A DNA stretch of 23,540 nt from Fonticula alba ATCC 38817 (Eukaryota; Protista; Nucleariida). Both the position numbers and the translations under genes were made by a program. Under the pieces are notes generated by a model. That model searched no databases. It was not told the DNA's origin and worked only from the letters and a program-made list of their open reading frames with translations. Each line of letters starts with the position of its first letter. Within the stretch, counting starts at the first letter, position 1. Below are positions 5,068-23,540 of the stretch, one piece after another. The stretch lies in NCBI GenBank assembly GCA_000388065.2, contig KB932205.1, one strand, 5' to 3'.

Positions 5068-8000
5068 ATGTCGCTCGCAGGCGAACTGGCGGCGCCGGGC
5101 GAGGCGTCGGCCCTGGCTCTGGGCCTCGGGGCTCTGGCGCCTGAGTGCGGGCCGGCGGCCAGTGCGTCGGCCGTCATCCTGCCGGCCTCGCCGAACTGGC
5201 ACTCCTCCAGCGCGGTGGCCGTGCACCCGCGCCTGCCGCTGGTGCTGCTGGCTTGCAAGGATGCCGTGGTTCTGGTGGCGCCGGCGACCGGTGGCGGGTG
5301 CCCCTCGGGGCCCTCGCCGGCGGACTTCCGCGTGGTGGCCTGGCACAATATGAATGGCTCGGCCGGGGCGCCCAATCGATCGATCGTCCGCGTGACGGCC
5401 GTGGCCTTCGCCCAGAGTGCGGCCGGGGCCGCGGGCCCGGGGGCCTTGCTGGAGGACGCCCTGCCGGCGGTGCGGCTGGTGGCCGGCTTGTCGGACAACC
5501 GGGTGGCCCTGTTCCAGGTGGCTCGCGGCGCGGCCGGCGGCCCGCACGGCGGCGCACGCTGGGTCCTCCGGCAGGTGGCCCGCCATGCGGGGCACCGATC
5601 GGCCGGGTCCACCGCCGACGGGGACTCCGGCGGGGTGTCTTCCGAGGGCACGGCCGCTGTGCCGGCCGGCGGGCCGGGCGGCCGGGCGCGCGGGAATCGC
5701 TCCGCCGGCACGGTGCCCCCCTCGTCAGTGACTACGGTCAGCGCGTCGGCCGACTCGCCGTGGGTGGTGTCCGGCGATGGGCTGGGCCGGGTGGTGGTTT
5801 GGCGCCTGCCATCGGGCGATGCTTCCGCCGGGCCGGACCCAGTGGCCGGCCTCCTTGACAGCCTTGTCCAGCCTGCCGGGCCGGCGAGCGACCCGGCAGC
5901 TCGGCGATTGCTGGAGCAGTCGCGCTTCCCGGCCCAGACGCACGGCGGGTCCGAGCAGACGGGCTACTGGTCGCGATTGCAATTGATCGGCGCGGCGACG
6001 GGCCCGGCGTCGGCCGGCGCCTCCTCCGGGTCGACCGTGCGCGGGGGCGGCAGCGGTGCCCGCGGTCGCGGGCCACGGGCCGCTGTCGGCGGATCTTCCG
6101 GCGGTGTGGCGGCCATCTGCTCGGATTGGGCCCCCTTCGCCGTGCCGGTCTTCGCCATCGGGTGCGTGCTCGAGGCCCCGTCGTTCCCGGCGCTGTGGGC
6201 TCTTGACTGACCCTTTCCCTCGCTCCTCGCTCCTCGGGACGACGCCGATGATGATGGTGTGCGTTTGTGTGTATTTCTGTGTGTGTATTTCTGTGTGTGT
6301 ATTTCTGTGTGTGTATTTCTGTGNNNNNNNNNNNNNNNNNNNNNNNNNNNNNNNNNNNNNNNNNNNNNNNNNNNNNNNNNNNNNNNNNNNNNNNNNNNNN
6401 NNNNNNNNNNNNNNNNNNNNNNNNNNNNNNNNNNNNNNNNNNNNNNNNNNNNNNNNNNNNNNNNNNNNNNNNNNNNNNNNNNNNNNNNNNNNNNNNNNNN
6501 NNNNNNNNNNNNNNNNNNNNNNNNNNNNNNNNNNNNNNNNNNNNNNNNNNNNNNNNNNNNNNNNNNNNNNNNNNNNNNNNNNNNNNNNNNNNNNNNNNNN
6601 NNNNNNNNNNNNNNNNNNNNNNNNNNNNNNNNNNNNNNNNNNNNNNNNNNNNNNNNNNNNNNNNNNNNNNNNNNNNNNNNNNNNNNNNNNNNNNNNNNNN
6701 NNNNNNNNNNNNNNNNNNNNNNNNNNNNNNNNNNNNNNNNNNNNNNNNNNNNNNNNNNNNNNNNNNNNNNNNNNNNNNNNNNNTGTATTTCTGTGCGTGT
6801 TTCTGTGTGTGTGTTTCTGTGCGTGTTTCTGTGTGTGTGCTTCTCGGTGTGGCACTCCTTACGCCCGTGTGTGTGCACGCGCGCGCGCGCGCGCGCCTGT
6901 GTGGCGGGCGGCGGGGACGCCAAATGGCAGCCACCAAAATGGCCAGATCTCCCTTTGCACCGTCCTGCCGGGGGCCCTGCTGGATGGGAGTGCCCCCTTT
7001 GCGGTGGCCATTTCCGCGCGACTGCGCGACCATTCGGACGCCGTGCAAACGGTGCGCTTTTCGCCGTTTCCGGTGTCGCCATTCGCCCCGGGCCCGGGTG
7101 CCAGCCCGGAACGCCGGGCAGTTCCGACCGCCGGGGCGTCGCTCGGCCCCGGCGTGGACTCGTGCCCGACCACGCCAGGGGTCGGCGGCCCGGCAGGGAC
7201 GGCGGCATCGGTCGGGCCGCTACAGTTGGCCTCATGTGCCGGGCTGGCACCGGTGCACGCGAGCCTCGGCGTGCCGCTGGTGGAGACGCTCTTCCTGGCC
7301 AGTGGCTCGCGCGACCAAACGGTGCGCGTGTGGGCCGTGCAGCCGGGCCTGCTGTCCGGCATCCGGGCGCCACTGCCGGCGGGTGATTCGCACCTGCTGG
7401 CCCTTGCTACCAGCTGCCTGGTGCGCTTCAATTACCCGCGCGACTCGACCGGACCCGGGGGCGGCCGCGGCCCGGGGGCAGCCGGGGGCCCATCCGCCGG
7501 CGACTCGGCCCCGGATGACGGTCGGCAGGCAAGCCGTCTGCGCGCGACGCTGACGTGGTCCGCCCGGCCAGGGGCCCCGGGCCGGGCTTACCAGTGTGTC
7601 TGTGCCCTGTCGACCGGGGCGGCCCCATGTGCCGGGGACCGGCTGGCGCCGATTCTCCTGTGCGGCTCGGCCAGTGGCGAGCTGTCGGTGTGGGACTTGG
7701 GCATGCCGCTGGTCCGGCTGCCGGGCCCGGCCGGCGGCGAGGCGGCCGCCGACGAGGCGCTCTTCGACATGCCGCGGTACACGACGGCCGGCGAGTGTGC
7801 GGCCTGGCGCCGGCGTTGGCCGGCCGACTTGCTTGCGGCGCCGGTGCTGCAGCATGCGCCGTGCTCCTTCCGGCCGGCATCGGCGGGATCGCCGGACGCC
7901 CCGGCCCCGCTCGGGGCTCGTCTCATCCGACGCCTGACCACCGGCGGCCATAATCGCACCATCTTTGGCCTGGACTTCGGGGGGTTTCCTTCGCCCGGCG

Positions 8001-8140: not shown

Positions 8141-8261
8141 TGTGTGTGTGCGTGCGTGTGTGCGTGCGTGCGTGCGTGCGTGCGTGCGTGGGTGCGTGGG
8201 TGCGTGCGTGCGTGCGTGTGCGTGTGTCTGTGCGCGCGTGCTCCTCCCTCCCTCCCTACCC

Positions 8262-12016: not shown

Positions 12017-15000
12017 TCTCAATCCCGAAATAGTCCACGCCTTTTTGTTTTCCCTTCTCCCCCTGGTGCGCCACGACCGCCGGCGACGTCGGCGGCCCCC
12101 TGCCCCGCTCGAGGGGAGGCCTGGCCGGGGTCCAGACGGGGGGGGGGCATTGCTTGGTGGAGACACATTTGTGTGGGTGTGCGCGTGCGCGCGTGCGGGG
12201 GAATGAGACCGCGCAAAGGAGGGAGCCGGTCGCGGCCGCCCTCCTCCGCGGCGGTGCATATGGCGCGGGCTGGTTCCTCATCCGGTCAGGAGGCCCTGCC
12301 TGCACCCCGTATCGCGGGGTGCGGGGGGAGATGACTCGGGCCGATCGGCGGGCGTGTGCTCCCCTTTCGGACGCACCTGCCCCCGATGGAGGCCTCCGGG
12401 GGGGGGGGGGGCGAGGGGCGTGTGCGCGCCGGTGCGAGCCCCCGCGACTCCGGGAGACCAGGCCTGGAGGCCGGACGAGATGCGCGAGGGGCCGGGGACA
12501 AAAAGCTGAGGCATTCCCTGGACAGCCGGCGACGCGCGGGTCCCACGCACGACGCGGGCCCGGGGGGCGTCGGGGGGGGGGGCCCCGCCCGGCGCCTGGT
12601 CGGCTCTCATGGGGCCGGATGGAGTTTGGGGGCGGGCGGCAAGGGCAGCAAGGGCGGCAAGGGCGAGGGGGGTTGGGGCGGCGGCCGGCCCTGGCGCGTC
12701 CGAGGGCACCGGGCCTGCCTGCCGGTGCGTCGTGAGCCGGCTGCCCTGCCGGCCCCGGGGCGCGGTGTGTGGCCCGATTGGGGGTGAGCCAGCCCCGCAG
12801 GGTGTGGGCAGTGGGTGGCGACGGGGGCGCGGGTGCGGGCACGCGGCGGGCGGGCCGGGGCACATTCTCCGGGCCCCCGTGCGCTGTGCCGCTATTTTTC
12901 AACACCCCGCGACATTTCCTCGCAGGGGGGCGGGCGGGACCAAATTTGGATTTCTCTCGGGGGATGGCCTCGGGGATTACATAAGAAAAGGCGCGCCCGG
13001 GAGGGAGTGTGCCCGGTGTCCCGCGCGCACGCAGGCCCTGAGTGCGTGGTTGCGCCGCCCCCCCTCCGCGGCTTGGACCGGCGTCCTGCGTTCCCACCCA
13101 TTCCCTGCCGGGTGCTCGGGCGTTGGGGCATCCCTGGCGCTCTCACGGGTCGTGGGTGCGGGGCGCCGCGGGCCGGGGGACTTCCCGGCTCCGAGCGAGA
13201 CGGCCCTGGTGCAGGAACCCCCCCCCCCCCCTGCTGGGCCCCCCGGCCCTCCGGGGGTCCCCAGCAGAAGGCCCCAAGGAGGTGCGGGGCCGCGGGCGTG
13301 GGTGTTGGCTTCGGTGCCGGGGGGGAGCCGGGGGCGCGCGCTTGCACGAGCGAAGCCGCCGCACGCACGCACATTTTAGCGAACCATGTGGCGAGAACTC
13401 GGGGCCATTTTCACGCTCGGGCCGAACTGCCAGTTGTGACGCTGGCAGGGATTCCGGCGATCCTGGTTTAGGGCCCCCGGCCGGCGGCCGCCCTCGCGCC
13501 CGCGCCGGGCGAGCTGTTGGGCGGAGGGGGGGGGGGGCCGGCGACCGCTTGGGCTGGCGCCCGCAAGCCCGGGCACTCGCGGCAACTCCGCCGTCCCTTG
13601 CCGGAGGGGAGGCACGTTGCTGGGGGGGGGGGCTGCCTCCGGGTGTGGGCGAATCCCCGCCAGGCCCTCGGGCGGGGCGGGGGGACAGCGGATTCCTCTG
13701 TTTCAGAATGGCCAGCGCTGGTGTGCCCTGCCAGGCAGCGCTCCCGGCCCGACCCCCCGGCAGAGGGGTTGGGCTGGATTTCACCCGGCTCCCACCTTCG
13801 GGGCGGCGGAGAAACCGGCCGGCGCCCGGGCCAGGACCCGAGACCCAGCGGCAGTTCCCAATGGTCTCCGAGCCATGTCTCGGCCCTGCCAGCGGTGGCC
13901 GGCGCCCGGATGGGGGTGCATGCTTGCGCGTTTGTCCCGCCCCCCCTCCCCCGGCCGGGGGAGGCAGATCGCGGGGCGCCCCCGGCTCGGAGGCCGATCG
14001 GCCCCTGTGCGAGTGTGTGCGTGTGCGCGCGCGGGGCTCGGCCGGGGGCCCCGGGGGGGGGGCGGGGGGGCGGGCGGGCAAGGGGGAGGTGCGGGCGAGG
14101 CGAGGCGAGGCGAGGCGAGACGAAGGGGGGCCCGCCGAGGGGCGCCGGCGCCGGGCCNNNNNNNNNNNNNNNNNNNNNNNNNNNNNNNNNNNNNNNNNNN
14201 NNNNNNNNNNNNNNNNNNNNNNNNNNNNNNNNNNNNNNNNNNNNNNNNNNNNNNNNNNNNNNNNNNNNNNNNNNNNNNNNNNNNNNNNNNNNNNNNNNNN
14301 NNNNNNNNNNNNNNNNNNNNNNNNNNNNNNNNNNNNNNNNNNNNNNNNNNNNNNNNNNNNNNNNNNNNNNNNNNNNNNNNNNNNNNNNNNNNNNNNNNNN
14401 NNNNNNNNNNNNNNNNNNNNNNNNNNNNNNNNNNNNNNCGTGCCCCGCCTCTCCGGCCCTAGGTCCGGGCCTGCGGTGTGCGGGCTCGCGGAGACGGTGT
14501 TTTCATTTTCGCCCCGTTGTGCCGGAGGGCCGCCCCGCGACGGGGAACGCGCCCGGGGCCTGATCGGAAGCCCGCCCGGCGCCCGGAGCCCCGCCCCCCC
14601 CCCAGTGCCGGGATTGTGATCGGTCCGGTCCACGCGGCGGCGGCGGCGGCGGCGGCCTTCGGCCCCGGTGTCCGGCGGCGGTGCGTGGCGCGTCAACTGC
14701 GGCTGTGTATTTGCGCCTCCGGGACTGGAGGGGGGGGGGGCACGGGTGCGTGTGCGACATCCGGCCGGGGAGAATGCCCGGAGCCCTTTCCCGGAAGGCT
14801 GGTAGGTGTGCGCCCGCACGCCGGCGTCGCCAATCCTCCGGCCGCCCTGCTCGCCCGGCGGGGCGGTTCCCGCGGAGCCTGTGACTACTGGCGCGCTGCC
14901 CGACCCGGCCCCCCCCCCCCGGCCACAAGCCCGGAGCGGCCCGCAACCCCCGGGCGTCTGGTCAGAGGTCTTGACTTCCGCGCCCCTGTGGGTCCAATCT

Positions 15001-16055
15001 CCGAGCCCCGGCCGCGGTGCGGGGGGGGTCATGGGGGAGACGCCCCCCGGGCATGGCCCGGTCCGGGGGAGGGCGTGGGGGTGGGGTGCCGGGGGCGCGG
15101 GGGTGGGGGGGGGGGGGTGCCGGCATGTGCACGGGGCGAGGCGAAATATTTCCCTCATCACCAAAGTATGGAGAGGAAGAGCCGCGTCCAGCCATCTCCC
15201 CCAGGTTCTGCCCCCTCCTCCCTTCCTTTCCCCTCCCCTCCCCTCCCCTCCTTGGATCTCCCCTTCCCTCTCGCCTCCTCCCGGTGTGCCGCGTCGCCCT
15301 TTGCCCGACTGCGCGCCCGGCTGCTCCTCCCTTGCCCCCTCCCCTCCCGTCACTCGGCCCTGTCACAGCCCAGCTTTTCTCGGCCCCGTCCTCCCCCCCC
15401 CCATTCCCCCATTGTCTCCCCCCTCGCCCGCAGCTTTGAGCAAGTTCTGCGGCTGAAGATCTCGCGCGCGTGCGCGCCCCTCTCTCCCCCCCCCCCCTCC
15501 CCTTCCCCTCGCCTCTGCTCCGGTTGTGTTGCCTCATCCACAGTAGAGCACGGNNNNNNNNNNNNNNNNNNNNNNNNNNNNNNNNNNNNNNNNNNNNNNN
15601 NNNNNNNNNNNNNNNNNNNNNNNNNNNNNNNNNNNNNNNNNNNNNNNNNNNNNNNNNNNNNNNNNNNNNNNNNNNNNNNNNNNNNNNNNNNNNNNNNNNN
15701 NNNNNNNNNNNNNNNNNNNNNNNNNNNNNNNNNNNNNNNNNNNNNNNNNNNNNNNNNNNNNNNNNNNNNNNNNNNNNNNNNNNNNNNNNNNNNNNNNNNN
15801 NNNNNNNNNNNNNNNNNNNNNNNNNNNNNNNNNNNNNNNNNNNNNNNNNNNNNNNNNNNNNNNNNNNNNNNNNNNNNNNNNNNNNNNNNNNNNNNNNNNN
15901 NNNNNNNNNNNNNNNNNNNNNNNNNNNNNNNNNNNNNNNNNNNNNNNNNNNNNNNNNNNNNNNNNNNNNNNNNNNNNNNNNNNNNNNNNNNNNNNNNNNN
16001 NNNNNNNNNNNNNNNNNNNNNNNNNNNNNNNNNNNNNNNNNNNNNNNNNNNNNNN

Positions 16056-16220
16056 CTCCCCCCCTGATATGTCCCCTATGTCGCTGGTTGGCCAACGCCA
16101 AGCGTCCCTGGCGGACACCGCCCGGTCCTGCCTTCCCCCCCCCCTCCCCCCCTGATATGTCCCCTATGTCGCTGGTTGGCCAACGCCAAGCGTCCCTGGC
16201 GGACACCGCCCGGTCCCTGC
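16056..16220 (+). repeat. Direct duplication (88-bp period) at a contig edge covering the predicted start codon
   Basis: cctgatatgtcccctatgtcgctggttggccaacgccaagcgtccctggcggacaccgcccggtcc occurs with its ATG at 16069 and again at 16157, immediately after the N-gap. Confidence 0.85.
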
Positions 16221-16922
16221 CGCACGGGGCCGCCACCGGCGGCGGCGGCGGCGGCAGCGGCCCCACCGCCGCCCTCGGCGCCACGCAGCAGGAGCTCCTC
16301 CTGCACTTTGACCTGGCCACCGAGCACCTCTACCTGCCGGAGGGTGTGGTCCCGCCGAAGGACCGCCTGCCGCCGGCCAGCGGGGAAGCCGGCCTGACGC
16401 TGGCCTCGACTCGGCGGCCGTTCCCCGGCTCCGGCTCCGGCTCGAGTCTGGTGACCGGCGGCTCCTCCTCCGGGCAGTTCGCGTCCCCCGGCGGCGGGCC
16501 GGCCGTCGGCCTCCAGCGCCTGCTGCCCGGGCCCGCGCCCTCCTCCGAGTCGCACTTCCTCTTCGGTGCCAATGCCGGGCCCGGCCCGTATGCCGACTCG
16601 AGCGCCCTCCTCCCCGGGCCTGGTCTGGCCGACGGGGGTCCCTTTTCGCAGCCGCGCTTCCTGACTCATGGGTGCGTCCCCCCCCCCCCCCCTTGCTATT
16701 CCTCCTTCTCGGCCGCCGCCTGCCCCATCGCTGCTGTGTCTCACATCTGCCCTGCTGACGGCTGGGCCCCTCCCCTGTGCCCCCCTTGTTCGGTTCGGCC
16801 CGCTCCATGCCATGCCACGCCGTGTCGCCTCTTCTCGCACCCCATGCCGGTTGCCGCGTGGCCCGGTCCAGATCCGGCGGCTATCCGACATCCGGCCACG
16901 GGGGCCCCACTCCGACGCCCCC

Positions 16923-16962
<40 letters not shown>

Positions 16963-19900
16963 TACCAGCCGGACGCCCGGGCCATCGGGCCGGTGTCTGT
17001 CCAGCAGCCACCGCTGCCGCCGCCGGCACAGCAGCAGCCCCTCGGCACCCCCAGCCGCGGGGACTTCCACGAGCCTGGCTCTTTCACCCCCTTCGGCCAG
17101 CACCCCGGCTCGGCGCACCAATCCCCCGGCAGCCGGAGCGACTCGTCCTCCCCCCCGCAGCCGGGCGACCTGCACCGGGCCAAGCGCCCGCATGACGCCC
17201 TCCTGCCGGGCCCCGGGCCGGTCATCCACCACGGGCAGCACCATGCCCCGGGCTCGGGAGCCGCGCGCTACATGCCCAGCCCCCATGGCCTCGGACCCGG
17301 CAACACCCCGGGCCCGAGCCCGCACTATGCCGGCCTGCCGTATGCCGGCGGCCCGCGTCCGGTGCCGGCCCCTCTCTCGGAGGAGTATTACCACGGGCTG
17401 GGGGCCGGGCCGGGTCCGTTGGCGGCCGTCCCGCTCGATGTCGGCTTTGCCGGGGCCCGCTCGCCGGGGCAGCACGGCCCGGGGCCCGCCGCCGGGGGGG
17501 GCACCTTCGCCATCGGCACCAACAATGGTCCTGGCCCCGGTGCTTCCCTCTCTTCCGGCCCGGGGGGCTACACCCCGCGGCACTACCTGCCGGCGGGCGG
17601 GGCCTCGGCAGCCGCATCGCCCGTGGTCGGTGGCGACCTGCCCCTGCACAAGCGCCCGCGCGCGGCATCCTTCTCCGGGGGTCTCTCGTCGCCCCGGCGC
17701 CCGGGCACCGGGGTGCTTTCCCACTCGGATGAGGAATCGCCGGTCCTGCCGGCCGAGGACTCCTTCGAGGGCGGTGGCTCGTACGCCCCGAACGGCGGGT
17801 CGGCCGGGCCCCATGGCGGGTACTCGTACCTGCCGCCGCCGCAGTTGCTGGTCGGCGCGCGCTGGCTCCCCGGGGCCGGGGCCTCGTCGGCCCGTGGCGG
17901 CGGCAGCGGCCCCAACTCGCAGTCGGACTCGCGCTCGGCGTCGCCCTTCCCCGGGAGCGGCCCCTCCGGGGGCCGGGGCTCCCCGGCCGGCACCTCGCGC
18001 TCCCTCGTGTCGCGGCTCAATCACAATGCCTCGGAGCGCCGGCGCGCCCACAGCATCAATGATGCCATCACCCGGCTGCGGCAGCTGGTCCCTGGCTGTC
18101 GGTCGTCCCTGGTGACGGACACCGGGGAAAAGATCAGCGGCAATGAGAAGGTCACCAAGTCCGATGTCCTGCACAAGACATGCACCTATGTGGAGGACTT
18201 GCAGCTGGACTATCAGGAACTCCTGGCCCACATCGACCGCATGGGCCGCGAGATGGACCGGCTGAAGGCGCAGCTGGCGGCCGCCCGTGGGGGGGACCGT
18301 GCCGTCACCGGCGCCTCGGCCCAAAAGCCCCCCGGCCGGCAGCATGAGCAGCGGCAGCAGCAGGCCGGCGAGTTGGCCCTGCCGCCGCCGCCGTCGCAAC
18401 AGCAGCAGCCGCAGCCGCAGCCGCAGCCGCAGCAGCCGCAGCACCATCTCCCCGGGCCGCCGTATGATACGGTGTCCTTGCCGGGCGCCGGGGCTTCGCC
18501 GGTCCTGCAGCAATCCCCGAATGCTGGTGGGCCCGCCATGCAGACGCTGGCCCGGTCGTCGGGCATGCATTCGCAGCAGCGCTTCGCCCCGCCCCACATG
18601 TATGCCGGCCACCCGGGCGTGGCGCCGAGCATGTTCGGCTCCCCCCGGTCGCTGTCTTCCTCCTCCTCCTCCTCCTCCTCTTGCTCCTCGGCGGCGGTGT
18701 CCTCCTCCTCCGAGCCGGAGGACGACCTGAACTCGCCGCACATGCCGGGCCCCGGCAGCGGCCACGGCGGTGGCACCGACCACTTCTCCCCGTCCCAGGC
18801 TGATGCCTCCTCCTCCGGGCCACACGGCTTCCCGGTCGGTCCTTCCGTCAGCACGGACGGCCTGTCGCAGCATCTGGCGGCCAGCCCATTTGGCGGCCCG
18901 CCGGTCAGCGGTGCGTTTGCCCTCTCTCCCTCTTTCCTTTCCTTCCTTCTTCCCCCTCGCTCGCCGCGTGCACCCCGCGCGCCATGTGCCTTGCCATTCT
19001 CTTGCATGGCGACTGCCCTGCTCTCATCCTCGCCCTGGGCGGGCCCCCCCTTCTGACGCGCTTTGTGCTGCCATGGATCCCCCCCGGTGCCGATGCTCCC
19101 CCTCCGGCGCTCTTCTCACACACACACACACACACACACTCGACCCACCCCCGGTGCAGATGGCTTTGGCATGGTGGAGGCGTATGGCGCACCCGGGTCC
19201 GGGGCCTTTGGGGCGGATCCCCTGGCCGCGGGTGCCCCGGCGGCCGGTGACGCCACGGCCGACGGCCAGATCAACACGCTGGAGCTGCTGGCCCCGCGCG
19301 AGCGGTCGCACGTTCCCCAGACCACCGGCACGGCCTTCCTGGAGTATGCCTCCTCGGTGTTCATCTTCATCACGGTGTTCATCTACCTGCCGATGGTGTT
19401 CGACCGGGCCACCAACGGCTCGACCAAGGCCGCCCTGTCGTCGGCCATTGTCGGCATGCCGGGCTTCCAGGGGGCCACCGGGGCCGGGCTGGCCGGGGCC
19501 GGGGGCACCTTGGCACACCTGGCCGCCGGGGCCGGCAACAATGGCACGGCCGATGTCCTGGCCGCGCCGGACCAGCTGCCGGGCCTGGTGAACTCGCTGT
19601 CCTCCAGCCAGAACCTGGTCCTGTCGCTGGTGGCCCTGGTGCCGGACCTGTCGGACCCGCTGTTCCCGGTCCGGTCGCTGGTGTACTCGGGGCTGGTGCT
19701 GGCCCTGAAGGTGTCGGTGTCGGTGGTGGTCTTCCGCCTGCTGCTGCTCCGGGCCACGGTCAATCTGTCCTCCTTCTCGCAGATGCGCCAGCGGGCGGAG
19801 CGCGCGCGTGCCCTCCGCCACCGGGCCGACGCTCTGGTCTCGGCCGGCAGCATCAACAAGGGCCGCGAGCTGTATGCCGAGGGGCTGGAGCTTCTGTGGG

Positions 19901-21180
19901 GCCGTCCCCTGCGGGCCATCTACTCGGCCAACCTGCTGTCCCCGCTGACGCGCTCAACCGTGGCCGAGCGCTTCCTCAACTTCTGTGCGTGCCATGCCGC
20001 CCCCTCTGGGTCTTCCTCCCCTCCTTTCCCCCCCCCCCCCCCAGCACAAAAGGGGAAGAAGAGAGAGGTATCCCACCCCAAACCAAAGAAATAAACAGCA
20101 AAAAAAACCAAAGAGATAATAATTTAACCCACACCAAAACCCTCCCCCCCCCCCCCCCACCCCCCCCCCCCCCCGGCAGGCGTGCTCATCCACACGACTC
20201 TCTTCCTGCTCTTCCACGGAGTTCTCTACATCTCCAACCGGGTGCCGGTCTTCCGAATGATCAGCAACCGGATCCTCCACCTGCCCGGTCTGGACGAGGT
20301 GACCAGCGAGATGGTGGCCCTGCTGTATGGCATCTTCAAGCACCAGCCCTACGAGACATGGCACACCTCGCTCCAAACCTACTCGTATGCCCTGGCCGCG
20401 GTCAACATGGAGGAGACCAAGCACTCCAACAGCGAGATCCTCACCGAGTTGCTGGCCTACTTCTCCATCGGGATCGAGCATGTGCGTGTCGCCGTGCTGC
20501 ATGTGGATCTCCCCGTGTCTCCGCCTCTCTGCCTTTTTGCCCCCCTTTCCACCCCTGTCCCGGGGCACACTTTCTAACATCCCCCCCCCCCCCCCCCCGC
20601 GCGCGCACCCCCTCGCATGCACCACTCCCGCACGCAGCTTGAGGTCCGCGACTTGGTGGAATACCTGCGCTCGCGGGCTCTCTACCTGGCGGCCGTGTAT
20701 CATGGCCCGGAGCAGGTGGCCCGGGTCCGGGCCATTCTCCAAGCCCAGACCCCGCCCGACCAGCAGCTCTTCCGCATGGCCCGGTCGTCGGCCCCATACC
20801 TGGTGTCTTTCATCCTGCGCATCATCATGCTGCTGATGACCAGCGTCAATGCGGCCGTCAGCATGCGCGGCCTGCGTGAGGAGGAGCTGGCCCTGTTCCT
20901 GTCGGATGAGGGCGCCAGCGGTGCCGACGTGGCCACCACTGCCGCCGGGTCCTGCGTCCCGGCCGGGGTGGCGGCCCTCAAGGCGCCCCCTGCGGGGGCC
21001 GACGCCGGTGACCGCGACGGCGGCCCGGCCGAGACGACGACCCCCGCCGCCGCTCACGACGGCGGCGTCGCCGCCAGCACCGTCCCAGACATGGCCATGC
21101 TCGGCTCCTCGGGGACGGCCTCCCCCCTTGCCGAGGGGTGTCCCTCCTCGCCGGCCGCCATCTCCCTCAAGCAGGCCTAG
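16157..21180 (+). CDS. SREBF: SREBP-like membrane-anchored bHLH-ZIP transcription factor; exons 16157-16671, 16872-18910, 19160-19984, 20180-20481, 20638-21180 (~1407 aa)
   Basis: Four GTGCGT...CAG introns (16672-16871, 18911-19159, 19985-20179, 20482-20637) each join the adjacent ORFs in exact phase; the CDS totals 4224 nt. Domain order is disordered N-terminus, bHLH-ZIP, TM1, loop, TM2, helical C-terminal domain. The C-terminal domain has RHRADALVSAG..LELLWGRPL and ALAAVNMEE, resembling SREBP RHRKQADLDLARG..LRALGRPL and ALSALNLAE. Additional 5' exons could lie in or before the gap at 15554-16055. Confidence 0.85.
16924..16962 (+). repeat. (CAG)12CAA encoding polyQ13 in the SREBP-like N-terminus
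   Basis: A perfect CAG run in frame with exon 2 (PPQQQQQQQQQQQQQYQP). Confidence 0.9.
18013..18285 (+). other. bHLH-leucine zipper domain of the SREBP-like protein
   Basis: RLNHNASERRRAHSINDAITRLRQLVP, a loop, then KVTKSDVLHKTCTYVEDLQLDYQELLAHIDRMGREMDRLKAQL. The HNA.E and SIND motifs, the helix-2 K.K..VL.K...Y pattern and the L/L/M/L heptads are all present. Confidence 0.93.
19345..19401 (+). other. Predicted transmembrane helix 1 of the SREBP-like protein
   Basis: YASSVFIFITVFIYLPMVF is a 19-residue uncharged hydrophobic run with a Pro near its end. Confidence 0.8.
19675..19749 (+). other. Predicted transmembrane helix 2 of the SREBP-like protein
   Basis: SLVYSGLVLALKVSVSVVVFRLLLL is hydrophobic and directly precedes the SREBP-like C-terminal domain. 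Confidence 0.7.
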
Positions 21181-21847
21181 CCTGCGCGTGTGCATCCCCC
21201 CCCCCCTGCTACGCATGCGAGACGCGGCTGGCTGGCTGGCTGGCTGGCTGGTGTTCTGCCATCGCGCTCCCCTCCCTCTCCCCCCTCGTCCTTGTGAATG
21301 GGTTGCTCCTCCTCCTTTGTATTCTAATTCCCCTGGAGCCGGGCCCGAAAGTGTGCTCGCGCACGTCCCCCCTCCCCCCCNNNNNNNNNNNNNNNNNNNN
21401 NNNNNNNNNNNNNNNNNNNNNNNNNNNNNNNNNNNNNNNNNNNNNNNNNNNNNNNNNNNNNNNNNNNNNNNNNNNNNNNNNNNNNNNNNNNNNNNNNNNN
21501 NNNNNNNNNNNNNNNNNNNNNNNNNNNNNNNNNNNNNNNNNNNNNNNNNNNNNNNNNNNNNNNNNNNNNNNNNNNNNNNNNNNNNNNNNNNNNNNNNNNN
21601 NNNNNNNNNNNNNNNNNNNNNNNNNNNNNNNNNNNNNNNNNNNNNNNNNNNNNNNNNNNNNNNNNNNNNNNNNNNNNNNNNNNNNNNNNNNNNNNNNNNN
21701 NNNNNNNNNNNNNNNNNNNNNNNNNNNNNNNNNNNNNNNNNNNNNNNNNNNNNNNNNNNNNNNNCACATACACCTACCTGCCCGCCCCCCCCCCCCCCCC
21801 AAGGCCCTCCGCGGCCCCTCCACCAGATAGACAGCCCCTCTCTCCCC

Positions 21848-22147: not shown

Positions 22148-23540
22148 TCACTTGCGGCTCTTCTCGAGCTCGGCGGTCGAGGGATTGGGCACGGTCATGG
22201 CGAAGGAGGACGACCGGCCGGAGGAGCCCGGCCCGTCGGATGGCGGCTGGGCCTCCAAGTTCAGCTGGGACAGGGTGACATCGACATTGACTCGAGCCCC
22301 GGTGGGGGCCAGGTGCGAGCCGACTGAGGATGTCCGAGGGCCGGTCCCGGCACCGACGGCGGCCCCGGTGCCAGCGCCAACATGGGGCACAGCATGCTTG
22401 GCTGTGGCCGACAGCATGGACTCCGGCCGGTGATGGCGCTGGTGTAGGGTCCCGCCGGTGCGGCGCGCCCCGCCGTCGATCGAGAGCTCGCCGCTGCTGC
22501 CGCTGCCGGAAAGGGCGCGCGATACGCTGCCCAGCGCCTCCATCTCCTCCAGCGTCAGGGGCCGGAGGCCGGTGTGGCTGGCGGGGTGCTCGCTGGCCGG
22601 GGCGGCCGGGCCGGGGCGCGCCAGGCCGGCGGTCGGGCCGGATGGCGCCAAGTCACCAGGCCGCGGCAGCCCCTCCGAAGAAGGCAGGGGCGAGCTGCTC
22701 CGGTCGCTTGGCCCCCCCCCTCCGGGCGGGACCACGGCGCCGGGCGCCGGGGCCGCGCCCCATGCGGCCGCGCCCTCCTCGGTCGGGCGGCCGATCGCCG
22801 ACGCCGGCACCGGCGGCGACATCATCGCCGATGCTGGGGCCGCCGCGTGGCCCACCTCCGGGGAGTTGAGCAGCGACCCGACCAGCGTCTCTTCCAAGGT
22901 CTGGAGGGACAGCTGCGCCGGGGCTGGCACCGGGGCCGGCTGGCGTCCGTTCAGCACGGCCAGGTCCGGCAGCAGGGTGTCCTGCTCGGCGGGCGGGGAG
23001 GGGGGCGCGCGCGCGGCGGCCCCCCCGGGCAGGGAGTGCATGGCTGGACGCCCGGAGAGCACGGTCAAATCCGCCAGCATGGGACTGCGGCGGGGCTCCG
23101 GGGCGGCGGGCGCGCGCGGGCCGACCGCGGGCCGGTCGCCGGCCGCCGACTTGGGGATCTCCATGGACGAGCGCCAGGACAGGGCTTCGCCGGCTGGCCG
23201 CGGGCTGCCGGGCGACAGGACCGCCGGGGCGGCCATGGGCGTGCCTCCGCCCTTGCTGCCGGCCGGCCCGCCGGCGGCCATGCTAGTGGCTGAGGAGCGC
23301 CAGCTGCCGGGGCCGGTGCGCGTGGGGCTGGCTGGAGGGGTGAGCCGGTTGCCGGCCCGGGGCCCGGGGGGGGGCCCGCCATGTGGCCGAGCTGCAGCAG
23401 CTCCTGCGCCGGTGGCCCCGCCGTTGGCGGTAGGGCTCCGGGGTGGCGGGTCGCGCGCCGGGGACCTGACGCGCGATCCTTCGCCCGGGCGAGTGGGCGA
23501 CGCTGGCACCGAGGGGGGCGCGCCGGCGCGGCGCAGGTGC
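22148..23540 (-). CDS. C-terminal exon of a Pro/Ala/Gly/Ser-rich, largely disordered protein (5'-truncated)
   Basis: The frame is open from the window end to TGA at 22150-22148. It contains protein-like islands (LSLQTLEETLVGSLLNSPEV, LRPLTLEEMEAL, NVDVTLSQLNLE). The 23509 start in the ORF track is an internal GTG. No domain was recognised. Confidence 0.7.
   Translation of the reverse strand, partial: HLRRAGAPPSVPASPTRPGEGSRVRSPARDPPPRSPTANGGATGAGAAAARPHGGPPPGPRAGNRLTPPASPTRTGPGSWRSSATSMAAGGPAGSKGGGTPMAAPAVLSPGSPRPAGEALSWRSSMEIPKSAAGDRPAVGPRAPAAPEPRRSPMLADLTVLSGRPAMHSLPGGAAARAPPSPPAEQDTLLPDLAVLNGRQPAPVPAPAQLSLQTLEETLVGSLLNSPEVGHAAAPASAMMSPPVPASAIGRPTEEGAAAWGAAPAPGAVVPPGGGGPSDRSSSPLPSSEGLPRPGDLAPSGPTAGLARPGPAAPASEHPASHTGLRPLTLEEMEALGSVSRALSGSGSSGELSIDGGARRTGGTLHQRHHRPESMLSATAKHAVPHVGAGTGAAVGAGTGPRTSSVGSHLAPTGARVNVDVTLSQLNLEAQPPSDGPGSSGRSSSFAMTVPNPSTAELEKSRK

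Follow-up and report, generated by a model that had tools for sequence, protein, structure and literature searches.

For transcription factors that are kept in a membrane until proteolysis sets them free, the SREBPs are the textbook example. The group B bHLH proteins are binders of the E-box CACGTG. Fonticula alba is a cellular slime mould, an opisthokont that belongs to a sister lineage of Fungi. A two-membrane-span architecture is common to fungal and animal SREBPs, and their hallmark is a Tyr in the basic region that replaces a conserved Arg (PMC3894159). An SREBP-type factor is to be expected in F. alba because it is an opisthokont, and with SREBPs known from animals as well as fungi, the presence of an SREBP-like gene here is no surprise. 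In the window, i.e. the whole stretch of 23,540 nucleotides of F. alba DNA that was analysed, the evidence as a whole moderately favours a genuine, transcribed, membrane-anchored bHLH-ZIP transcription factor that follows the design of SREBP, would be released by proteolysis and would bind an E-box-type site. A V-ATPase d subunit gene lies nearby, and its product is 99% identical to a Fonticula alba protein (contig KB932205.1).

The original prediction was a hidden five-exon gene, in which five ORFs are joined via four in-phase GTGCGT..CAG introns to encode about 1407 aa. Splicing of 16157-16671, 16872-18910, 19160-19984, 20180-20481 and 20638-21180 (all on the + strand) indeed yields a 4224-nt CDS with 0 internal stops that encodes exactly 1407 aa, and the joints 16671/16872, 18910/19160, 19984/20180 and 20481/20638 are all in phase. 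GTGCGT begins and CAG ends each of the 4 introns. Between 16001 and 21300 this hexamer occurs four times on the + strand, every time at an exon end, and was not found on the - strand. Window-wide it is in about 4.7-fold excess (46 observed versus 9.8 expected), part of which is supplied by a microsatellite at 8148-8223. Exons have a GC3 of 0.80-0.96, and the value falls in the introns. Exon 1 (16157..16671, +; aa 1-172) is Gly/Ser/Pro-rich; RNA contigs begin at 16161, and no usable start precedes the ATG at 16157. A 502-N assembly gap ends at 16055, upstream of exon 1, and the proposed ATG falls within a perfect 73-nt duplicate (16056-16128 = 16144-16216); the 5' end is therefore uncertain and the true N-terminus of the protein may lie in the gap. 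Exon 2 (16872..18910, +; aa 172-851), with RNA contigs over 16972-18371 and 18452-18909, encodes an N-terminal region of low complexity (Gly/Pro/Ser/Gln) that includes a polyQ run and the basic cluster KRPR (17650-17661), then the bHLH-ZIP and a Ser/Pro/Gln linker. Exon 3 (19160..19984, +; aa 852-1126) carries two hydrophobic segments with the loop between them, an Arg-rich stretch and a helical hairpin. A third hydrophobic segment and helices including ALAAVNMEE are found in exon 4 (20180..20481, +; aa 1127-1227), and exon 5 (20638..21180, +; aa 1228-1407) contributes helices, a fourth hydrophobic segment and an Ala/Gly-rich end closed by TAG at 21178-21180.

All four introns, each GTGCGT..CAG on the + strand, are skipped by RNA contigs in both samples (X1 and X3), as the hidden-gene proposal implied. 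For intron 1 (16672..16871, 200 nt) and intron 4 (20482..20637, 156 nt), the joints 16670>16871 and 20481>20638 (the latter side 255) are listed as GT..AG in both samples. RNA is contiguous from 18909 to 19159 across intron 2 (18911..19159, 249 nt) in X1 and X3, and RNA positions account exactly for the 19984/20180 joint at intron 3 (19985..20179, 195 nt), which has an A-rich core and poly-C tracts. One contig (X1 record 3; X3 record 9) runs unbroken through 18714-18909, 19159-19985, 20187-20481 and 20638-21205. Exon 2 is thus physically joined to exons 3-5, and the link at 18910/19160, on which the proposal turned, is present in the RNA contigs of both samples. An RNA contig extends to 21340, into the 3' UTR. 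The upstream region 14439-15553 has no RNA contigs in the same runs, a silence that serves as a control that X1 and X3 are RNA. The five-exon gene is real and expressed.

The bHLH domain (18013..18204, +; aa 553-616) matches Pfam HLH with an E value of 5.1e-14 (52 bits). It is followed, continuously with helix 2, by a leucine zipper (18169..18276, +; heptad listing) of four heptads with hydrophobic d positions (L615, L622, M629, L636) and a positions (V612, Y619, I626, M633, L640), and the USF2 and Myc alignments run through it; the bHLH-ZIP assignment is thereby borne out. The sequence of the basic region is HNASERRRAHSIND. It has His5 and Glu9, with an Arg at the SREBP Tyr site and an Ala at the group B Arg13 site, so that the group B set of His/Lys5, Glu9 and Arg13 is incomplete at position 13. 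In the HMMER alignment to human SREBP-1a (1AM9), 16 of the 33 residues of the basic region and helix 1 are identical (48%). There the SREBP-1a stretch EKRYRSSIND faces ERRRAHSIND, in which Arg stands in place of Tyr and Ala in place of the next Arg; the basic region thus lacks the SREBP signature Tyr. With this part as query, SREBP-1a ties with USF2 for the top PDB score (20.8 bits), whereas the whole bHLH-ZIP ranks USF2 (28 bits), Myc (26), Tye7 (22.7) and SREBP-1a (21.2) in this order.

Downstream of the bHLH-ZIP, hydrophobic segment 1, candidate TM1 (19336..19401, +; aa 911-932, FLEYASSVFIFITVFIYLPMVF), has a Kyte-Doolittle (KD) 19-mer peak of 2.02 and a Hessa sum of +1.2. Segment 2, candidate TM2 (19681..19749, +; aa 1026-1048), has a KD peak of 2.44 and a strongly positive C-terminal flank. 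The 93-aa loop between them is Gly/Ala-rich and has two N-x-S/T sequons, NGS at aa 937 and NGT at aa 979. These sequons, the positive flank and the hydrophobicity fit an N-in/C-in hairpin. Segment 3 (aa 1126-1144, +) straddles intron 3 with a KD of 1.99, and segment 4 (20797-20859, +; aa 1281-1301) has a KD of 1.97. Hydrophobic segments downstream of the bHLH are thus found as predicted, but on the hydropathy scales they number four of equal strength (KD 1.97-2.44; Hessa sums 0.9-1.9) and not the two TM helices that had been claimed, which makes the topology ambiguous.

In the C-terminal tail, the motifs RHRADALVSAG...LWGRPL (19816-19911) and ALAAVNMEE (20389-20415) stand exactly where they had been placed. 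They may correspond to parts of the SREBP regulatory domain. In the animal SREBP-1 tail, blocks of the form RHR..AD..G...LGRPL, then AL.Y, then AL.A.N..E follow TM2 in the same order. That the tail is homologous to the C-terminal domains of SREBPs, also part of the original prediction, did not receive support from the searches. Exons 3-5 (as exon pieces) gave no match to DUF2014 or any other Pfam family at E<=1; the tail pieces found no Sre1 or SREBP chain among PDB sequences at E<=10 and no significant match in metagenome scans; and phmmer with exon 3 returned 0 matches among 1.84e9 protein representatives. The AF2 model of the exon 3 piece is all-helical and poor (pLDDT 53), that of the exon 4 piece has five helices (pLDDT 52), and Foldseek with the piece models against AFDB Swiss-Prot retrieved no SREBP. 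All these are weak tests, because exon pieces and not the spliced tail were used as queries and folding was done without an alignment. DUF2014 is moreover reported as confined to Ascomycota SREBPs (PMC3894159); it is therefore a poor criterion here, and its absence is not decisive.

Could the locus be a gene-model artefact, in which two neighbouring genes, one for a soluble bHLH protein and one for a membrane protein, are linked only by rare read-through or by an assembly error? Unspliced exon 2 does run into a stop inside intron 2 (19054-19056), assembly gaps lie on either side of the locus, one edge of which is duplicated, and the transcript data are Logan contigs, from which rare isoforms are dropped. 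However, the only contigs crossing 18910/19160 are spliced, in frame and canonical GT..AG in both samples, none retaining intron 2 in X1 or X3, and depths are alike on either side of this joint (X1 17.9-26.4; X3 21.4-36.6), which makes such an artefact very improbable. Another reading takes the protein as polytopic with four spans and two loops, one of 77 aa in the cytosol and one of 136 aa in the lumen. If all four segments span the membrane, there is no cytosolic regulatory domain, and the bHLH part would be released otherwise (e.g. by ERAD/proteasomal clipping) or would be active while tethered at the inner nuclear membrane. Segments 3 and 4 are as hydrophobic as segments 1 and 2 (KD 1.99 and 1.97 versus 2.02 and 2.44), with Hessa sums of 0.9-1.9 for the set. 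Against this, both have polar stripes (H/T/T/H/G in segment 3, S/R/T/S/N in segment 4) like the buried helices of a soluble helical domain, and the charge of +3 on the C-side of segment 3 does not go well with a lumenal position. We regard the four-span arrangement as unlikely.

The protein could also be a true SREBP orthologue or paralogue, with a tail that is homologous to the regulatory domain and binds a SCAP-like escort, and with a coupling of sterol or oxygen supply to proteolytic release. The parts in SREBP order, the opisthokont host and the basic region and helix 1 (16/33 identical to SREBP-1a, top PDB score shared with USF2) argue for this, and the similar blocks of the animal SREBP-1 tail are a lead and not a test. 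It is opposed by the missing signature Tyr and by the lack of a significant tail match in Pfam, PDB, the 1.84e9 proteins and Foldseek. A true SREBP is thus possible, if on the doubtful side. Slightly more speculative is the idea, advanced here only tentatively, that the tail is homologous to the SREBP regulatory domain of the animal type, though highly diverged from it, and that F. alba has a small family of Tyr-less factors of SREBP architecture.

The tethered bHLH-ZIP factor that we prefer has, in order, a long, disordered N-terminal part bearing the KRPR cluster, the bHLH-ZIP, a linker of about 265 aa, a putative hydrophobic hairpin and some 260 aa of helical tail. A bHLH-ZIP with membrane segments downstream makes the layout SREBP-like. 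Of the predicted SREBP architecture, the layout, the bHLH-ZIP and the membrane segments are supported, whereas searches with exon pieces found no similarity for the tail, and the signature Tyr is an Arg here. Against the preferred reading weigh the Tyr and Arg13 replacements, the higher scores of USF2, Myc and Tye7 than of SREBP-1a across the whole bHLH-ZIP, the unmatched tail and the four equally hydrophobic segments. The protein is best viewed as SREBP-like in design and is probably derived from opisthokont SREBP stock, a statement about origin and not a demonstration of family membership. It would reside in the membrane of the ER or the nuclear envelope, its two ends facing the cytosol. In response to a sensed signal, regulated proteolysis, in the first membrane segment or close to it, would free the N-terminal part of about 900 aa, which would then move to the nucleus. 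As His5 and Glu9 are kept, with Arg in place of the SREBP Tyr and Ala in place of Arg13, an E-box-type site would be expected as DNA target and not a sterol-response element. On the predicted splitting of the gene by unspliced ORF calling, a public protein collection bears indirectly: it gave no match to exon 3 or to the bHLH, though F. alba proteins are included in it. The gene seems to be absent from public protein collections, and collection-based surveys of transcription factors would therefore miss it. An SREBP layout without the Tyr and without Arg13 suggests that the membrane-tether design is separable from the DNA-recognition switch. If the tail is indeed a diverged homologue and such a family exists, the membrane tether and the escort-controlled release of a bHLH-ZIP would be older than the Arg-to-Tyr switch or separable from it, and F. 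alba, an opisthokont from the fungal side, would harbour a natural 'pre-SRE' version of the pathway. The gene may thus offer a handle on pathway assembly in early opisthokonts.

With the SREBPs (SREBF1/2; Sre1/SrbA), the F. alba protein shares an N-terminal activation-type region, the bHLH-ZIP, a linker, a putative hydrophobic hairpin and a helical C-terminal tail, as well as an opisthokont host. It differs in the Arg for the signature Tyr and the Ala for the following Arg, in two further hydrophobic segments in a tail with no detected sequence or fold match, and in a much longer linker (about 265 aa) and loop (93 aa). The loop of human SREBP is about 30 aa. The group B bHLH-ZIP proteins of the USF/Myc-Max type provide the best whole-domain PDB matches (USF2 28 bits, Myc 26 bits) and conserve His5 and Glu9; however, they have Arg13 where the F. 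alba protein has Ala, and they are soluble nuclear proteins without membrane segments. Tye7, the third-best PDB match, and Hms1/Cph2 are anchorless yeast SREBP-like bHLH proteins, which illustrate that SREBP-type bHLH domains are re-usable outside sterol control (PMC3894159). They kept the Tyr and lost the membrane part, whereas the F. alba protein shows the reverse. Proteolytic release from a membrane is also known for the bZIP factors ATF6/CREB3, plant bZIP28/NTL and Mga2/Spt23. Although these have another DNA-binding fold, a single span in place of a hairpin and no sequence relation to the F. alba protein, the logic is shared: a cytosol-facing DNA-binding domain held by a membrane anchor.

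The five-exon gene foreseen in the original prediction is confirmed. Exons 16157-16671, 16872-18910, 19160-19984, 20180-20481 and 20638-21180 (all on the + strand), read and spliced by script, join through introns of phases 2, 1, 1 and 0 into a coding sequence of 4224 nt with one stop only, the terminal one, and the encoded protein has 1407 aa, as had been proposed. All four introns start with GTGCGT and end with CAG. The acceptor of intron 1 is CCAG (16868-16871), which keeps the phase. A CAG at 16926 was also considered as acceptor for this intron and was discarded, being out of phase; the true acceptor ends at 16871. By codon position, GC3 is 0.80-0.96 across the exons and lower in the introns. 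Between 16001 and 21300, GTGCGT is found only four times on the + strand, each time at an exon end, and zero times on the - strand. Window-wide it occurs 46 times versus 9.8 in shuffles, an approximately 4.7-fold excess that is compatible with a preferred donor sequence, 15 of the 46 matches being supplied by a (GTGC)-type microsatellite at 8148-8223 (+). This microsatellite falls inside an annotated 1733-aa gene (5068 to beyond 11590) that shows faint WD40/IFT122-like matches and also spans an N gap (6324-6783). Another GTGCGT, at 1195, coincides with a frame change of the coding signal in the V-ATPase subunit d gene (27-1590, + strand; Pfam vATP-synt_AC39, E 4.5e-51), whose exon shares 99% identity with the protein annotated in Fonticula alba (GCA_000388065.2, contig KB932205.1, ~1.79 Mb). 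Downstream, a long ORF on the - strand (22148-23509; GC3 0.83-0.93) is rich in Pro, Ala, Gly and Ser and matches no Pfam family. The single-exon product guessed from its first ATG has no match on record, and the gene is thus probably spliced or runs past the window edge.

Evidence for transcription comes from four 2012 runs of two RNA samples (X1 and X3), with contigs mapped to 16056-21340. In these runs 77% of the sampled words from 17900-21200 are present, which is about the exonic share, and the contigs skip all four introns. The joints 16670>16871 and 20481>20638 are of the GT..AG type in both samples. A single contig per sample (record 3 of X1, record 9 of X3) spans 18714-18909, 19159-19985, 20187-20481 and 20638 onward; since its record coordinates are contiguous, introns 2 and 3 are also spliced out and exon 2 shares a molecule with exons 3-5. 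Six unplaced letters between record positions 863 and 870 are exactly 20181-20186. The transcript link between exons 2 and 3, chosen beforehand as a test of the prediction, is therefore seen in contigs of both X1 and X3. No RNA signal was detected over upstream positions 14439-15553 in any of the four runs, which shows that these are RNA and not contaminating DNA. Two large 2026 raw-read runs labelled 'organism B' (X12 and X13) were rejected as expression evidence: only poly-C tracts were matched, and the organism is absent from both, despite the shared species label. The tracts that draw such unrelated reads lie upstream of the start codon (16135-16152), in intron 3 (20028-20045) and in intron 4 (20581-20598). 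The core of intron 3 (20040-20140) is A-rich and low in GC, with poly-C on its flanks, in a locus of about 70% GC.

At the 5' side, a 502-N gap (15554-16055) is adjoined by a 73-nt perfect direct duplicate (16056-16128 = 16144-16216), probably a gap-edge assembly artefact. The true 5' end of the gene is uncertain because this duplicate contains the proposed ATG. The RNA contigs start at 16161. The roughly 4 kb that precede the gene (12200-16055) carry no codon-position GC signal and form an unusually long non-coding stretch with two N gaps; their readable part is the silent 14439-15553.

The predicted bHLH-ZIP is real. Pfam HLH was detected at aa 553-616 (E 5.1e-14), the sole family in the five exon pieces at E<=1, and helix 2 continues as four heptads in which positions a and d are hydrophobic (L615, L622, M629 and L636 at d). 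The 550 residues N-terminal to this domain are rich in Gly, Pro, Ser and Gln and include a polyQ run as well as a KRPR cluster, and the 265 residues C-terminal to it are rich in Ser, Pro and Gly. A published definition of the SREBP family comprises a bHLH in which a characteristic Tyr takes the place of a conserved Arg, followed by two membrane spans and by a C-terminal portion (PMC3894159). Over the basic region and helix 1, the top PDB match is the SREBP-1a crystal chain 1AM9, with 16 of 33 residues identical (HMMER). Here the EKRYR of SREBPs is replaced by ERRRA, i.e. Arg for Tyr and Ala for the next Arg, position 13 in group B bHLHs. With the whole bHLH-ZIP, the PDB scores are 28 bits for USF2, 26 for Myc, 22.7 for Tye7 (a yeast SREBP-like bHLH protein) and 21.2 for SREBP-1a. 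The DNA-binding domain thus resembles SREBP in helix 1 and is devoid of the signature Tyr, and the basic region suggests binding of the E-box type rather than SRE binding. ESM Atlas matches to the bHLH were generic fungal HLH clusters, and a metagenome locus scan with this domain gave no relatives.

The tail, encoded by exons 3-5, was compared with SREBP by several methods. No Pfam family was found in the pieces from exons 3-5 at E<=1, no SREBP or Sre1 (fungal SREBP) chain among PDB sequences with exons 3, 4 and 5 taken separately (E<=10), and no relative in a metagenome locus scan with exon 4. The ESM Atlas returned only weak TPR-like or unnamed matches for the tail pieces (0.77 and 0.69). 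AlphaFold models made without alignment were poor (pLDDT 53 for the exon 3 piece, 52 for the exon 4 piece), and Foldseek with these low-confidence models against AFDB Swiss-Prot gave chance helical matches only. These negatives are weak, because the domain was cut into three pieces and searched without an alignment, and because the tails of SREBPs show little conservation even among fungal members. Two tail motifs, RHRADALVSAG...LWGRPL and ALAAVNMEE, are indeed located at 19816-19911 and 20389-20415, as predicted. Their proposed resemblance to the SREBP regulatory domain is tentative, and the human SREBP-1 tail presumably contains similar blocks in the same order, which serves as a lead only; a literature search found no paper printing these SREBP-1 strings.

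Following the bHLH-ZIP, hydrophobic segments are present as predicted, but there are four of them with nearly equal strength, so that 'two TM helices' is one reading only. They lie at aa 911-932, 1026-1048, 1126-1144 and 1281-1301, with Kyte-Doolittle 19-mer peaks of 2.02, 2.44, 1.99 and 1.97, respectively, and Hessa-scale sums of 0.9 to 1.9. Two N-x-S/T sequons lie in the loop that joins segment 1 to segment 2, and the C-terminal flank of segment 2 is highly Arg-rich; both features fit a hairpin having the protein ends in the cytosol. Because segments 3 and 4 each show a polar face, they may be extra membrane spans or else helices buried in a soluble, helical domain. A four-span membrane resident is a serious, if rather unlikely, rival: segments 3 and 4 are nearly as hydrophobic as 1 and 2 and may be additional spans, but their polar faces suit a soluble domain as well. 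A gene-fusion artefact is very unlikely indeed, exon 2 and exons 3-5 being on one RNA contig in both samples. The best-supported reading is a bHLH-ZIP factor that would be stored in the membrane and freed by putative proteolysis, in an SREBP-like design. Whether it could sense sterol or oxygen through a SCAP-like partner is a more tentative proposal, possible although doubtful.

The gene seems to have escaped public protein sets. Although the collections include F. alba proteins, exon 3 is unmatched there at any length (phmmer of this piece against 1.84e9 representatives gave 0 matches, its own protein included), and the bHLH region, used in word-indexed searches with cut-offs of E<=1e-3 and E<=10, matched no protein of 373-1188 aa. 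The public set thus seems to be devoid of the bHLH gene, or at least of its membrane part. A literature search pairing SREBP with Fonticula or Thecamonas found no paper. Among the cellular slime moulds, F. alba belongs to the Holomycota, the fungal side of the opisthokonts. SREBPs occur in animals and fungi alike, and an SREBP-type gene is thus expected in this lineage. The SREBP interpretation is partly supported: the gene, its bHLH-ZIP and its layout agree with it, but the signature Tyr is absent and the tail found no match in the piece-wise searches. The F. alba gene thus has the architecture of an SREBP but lacks the signature of that family, and it belongs to a lineage in which relatives of SREBP are to be expected.
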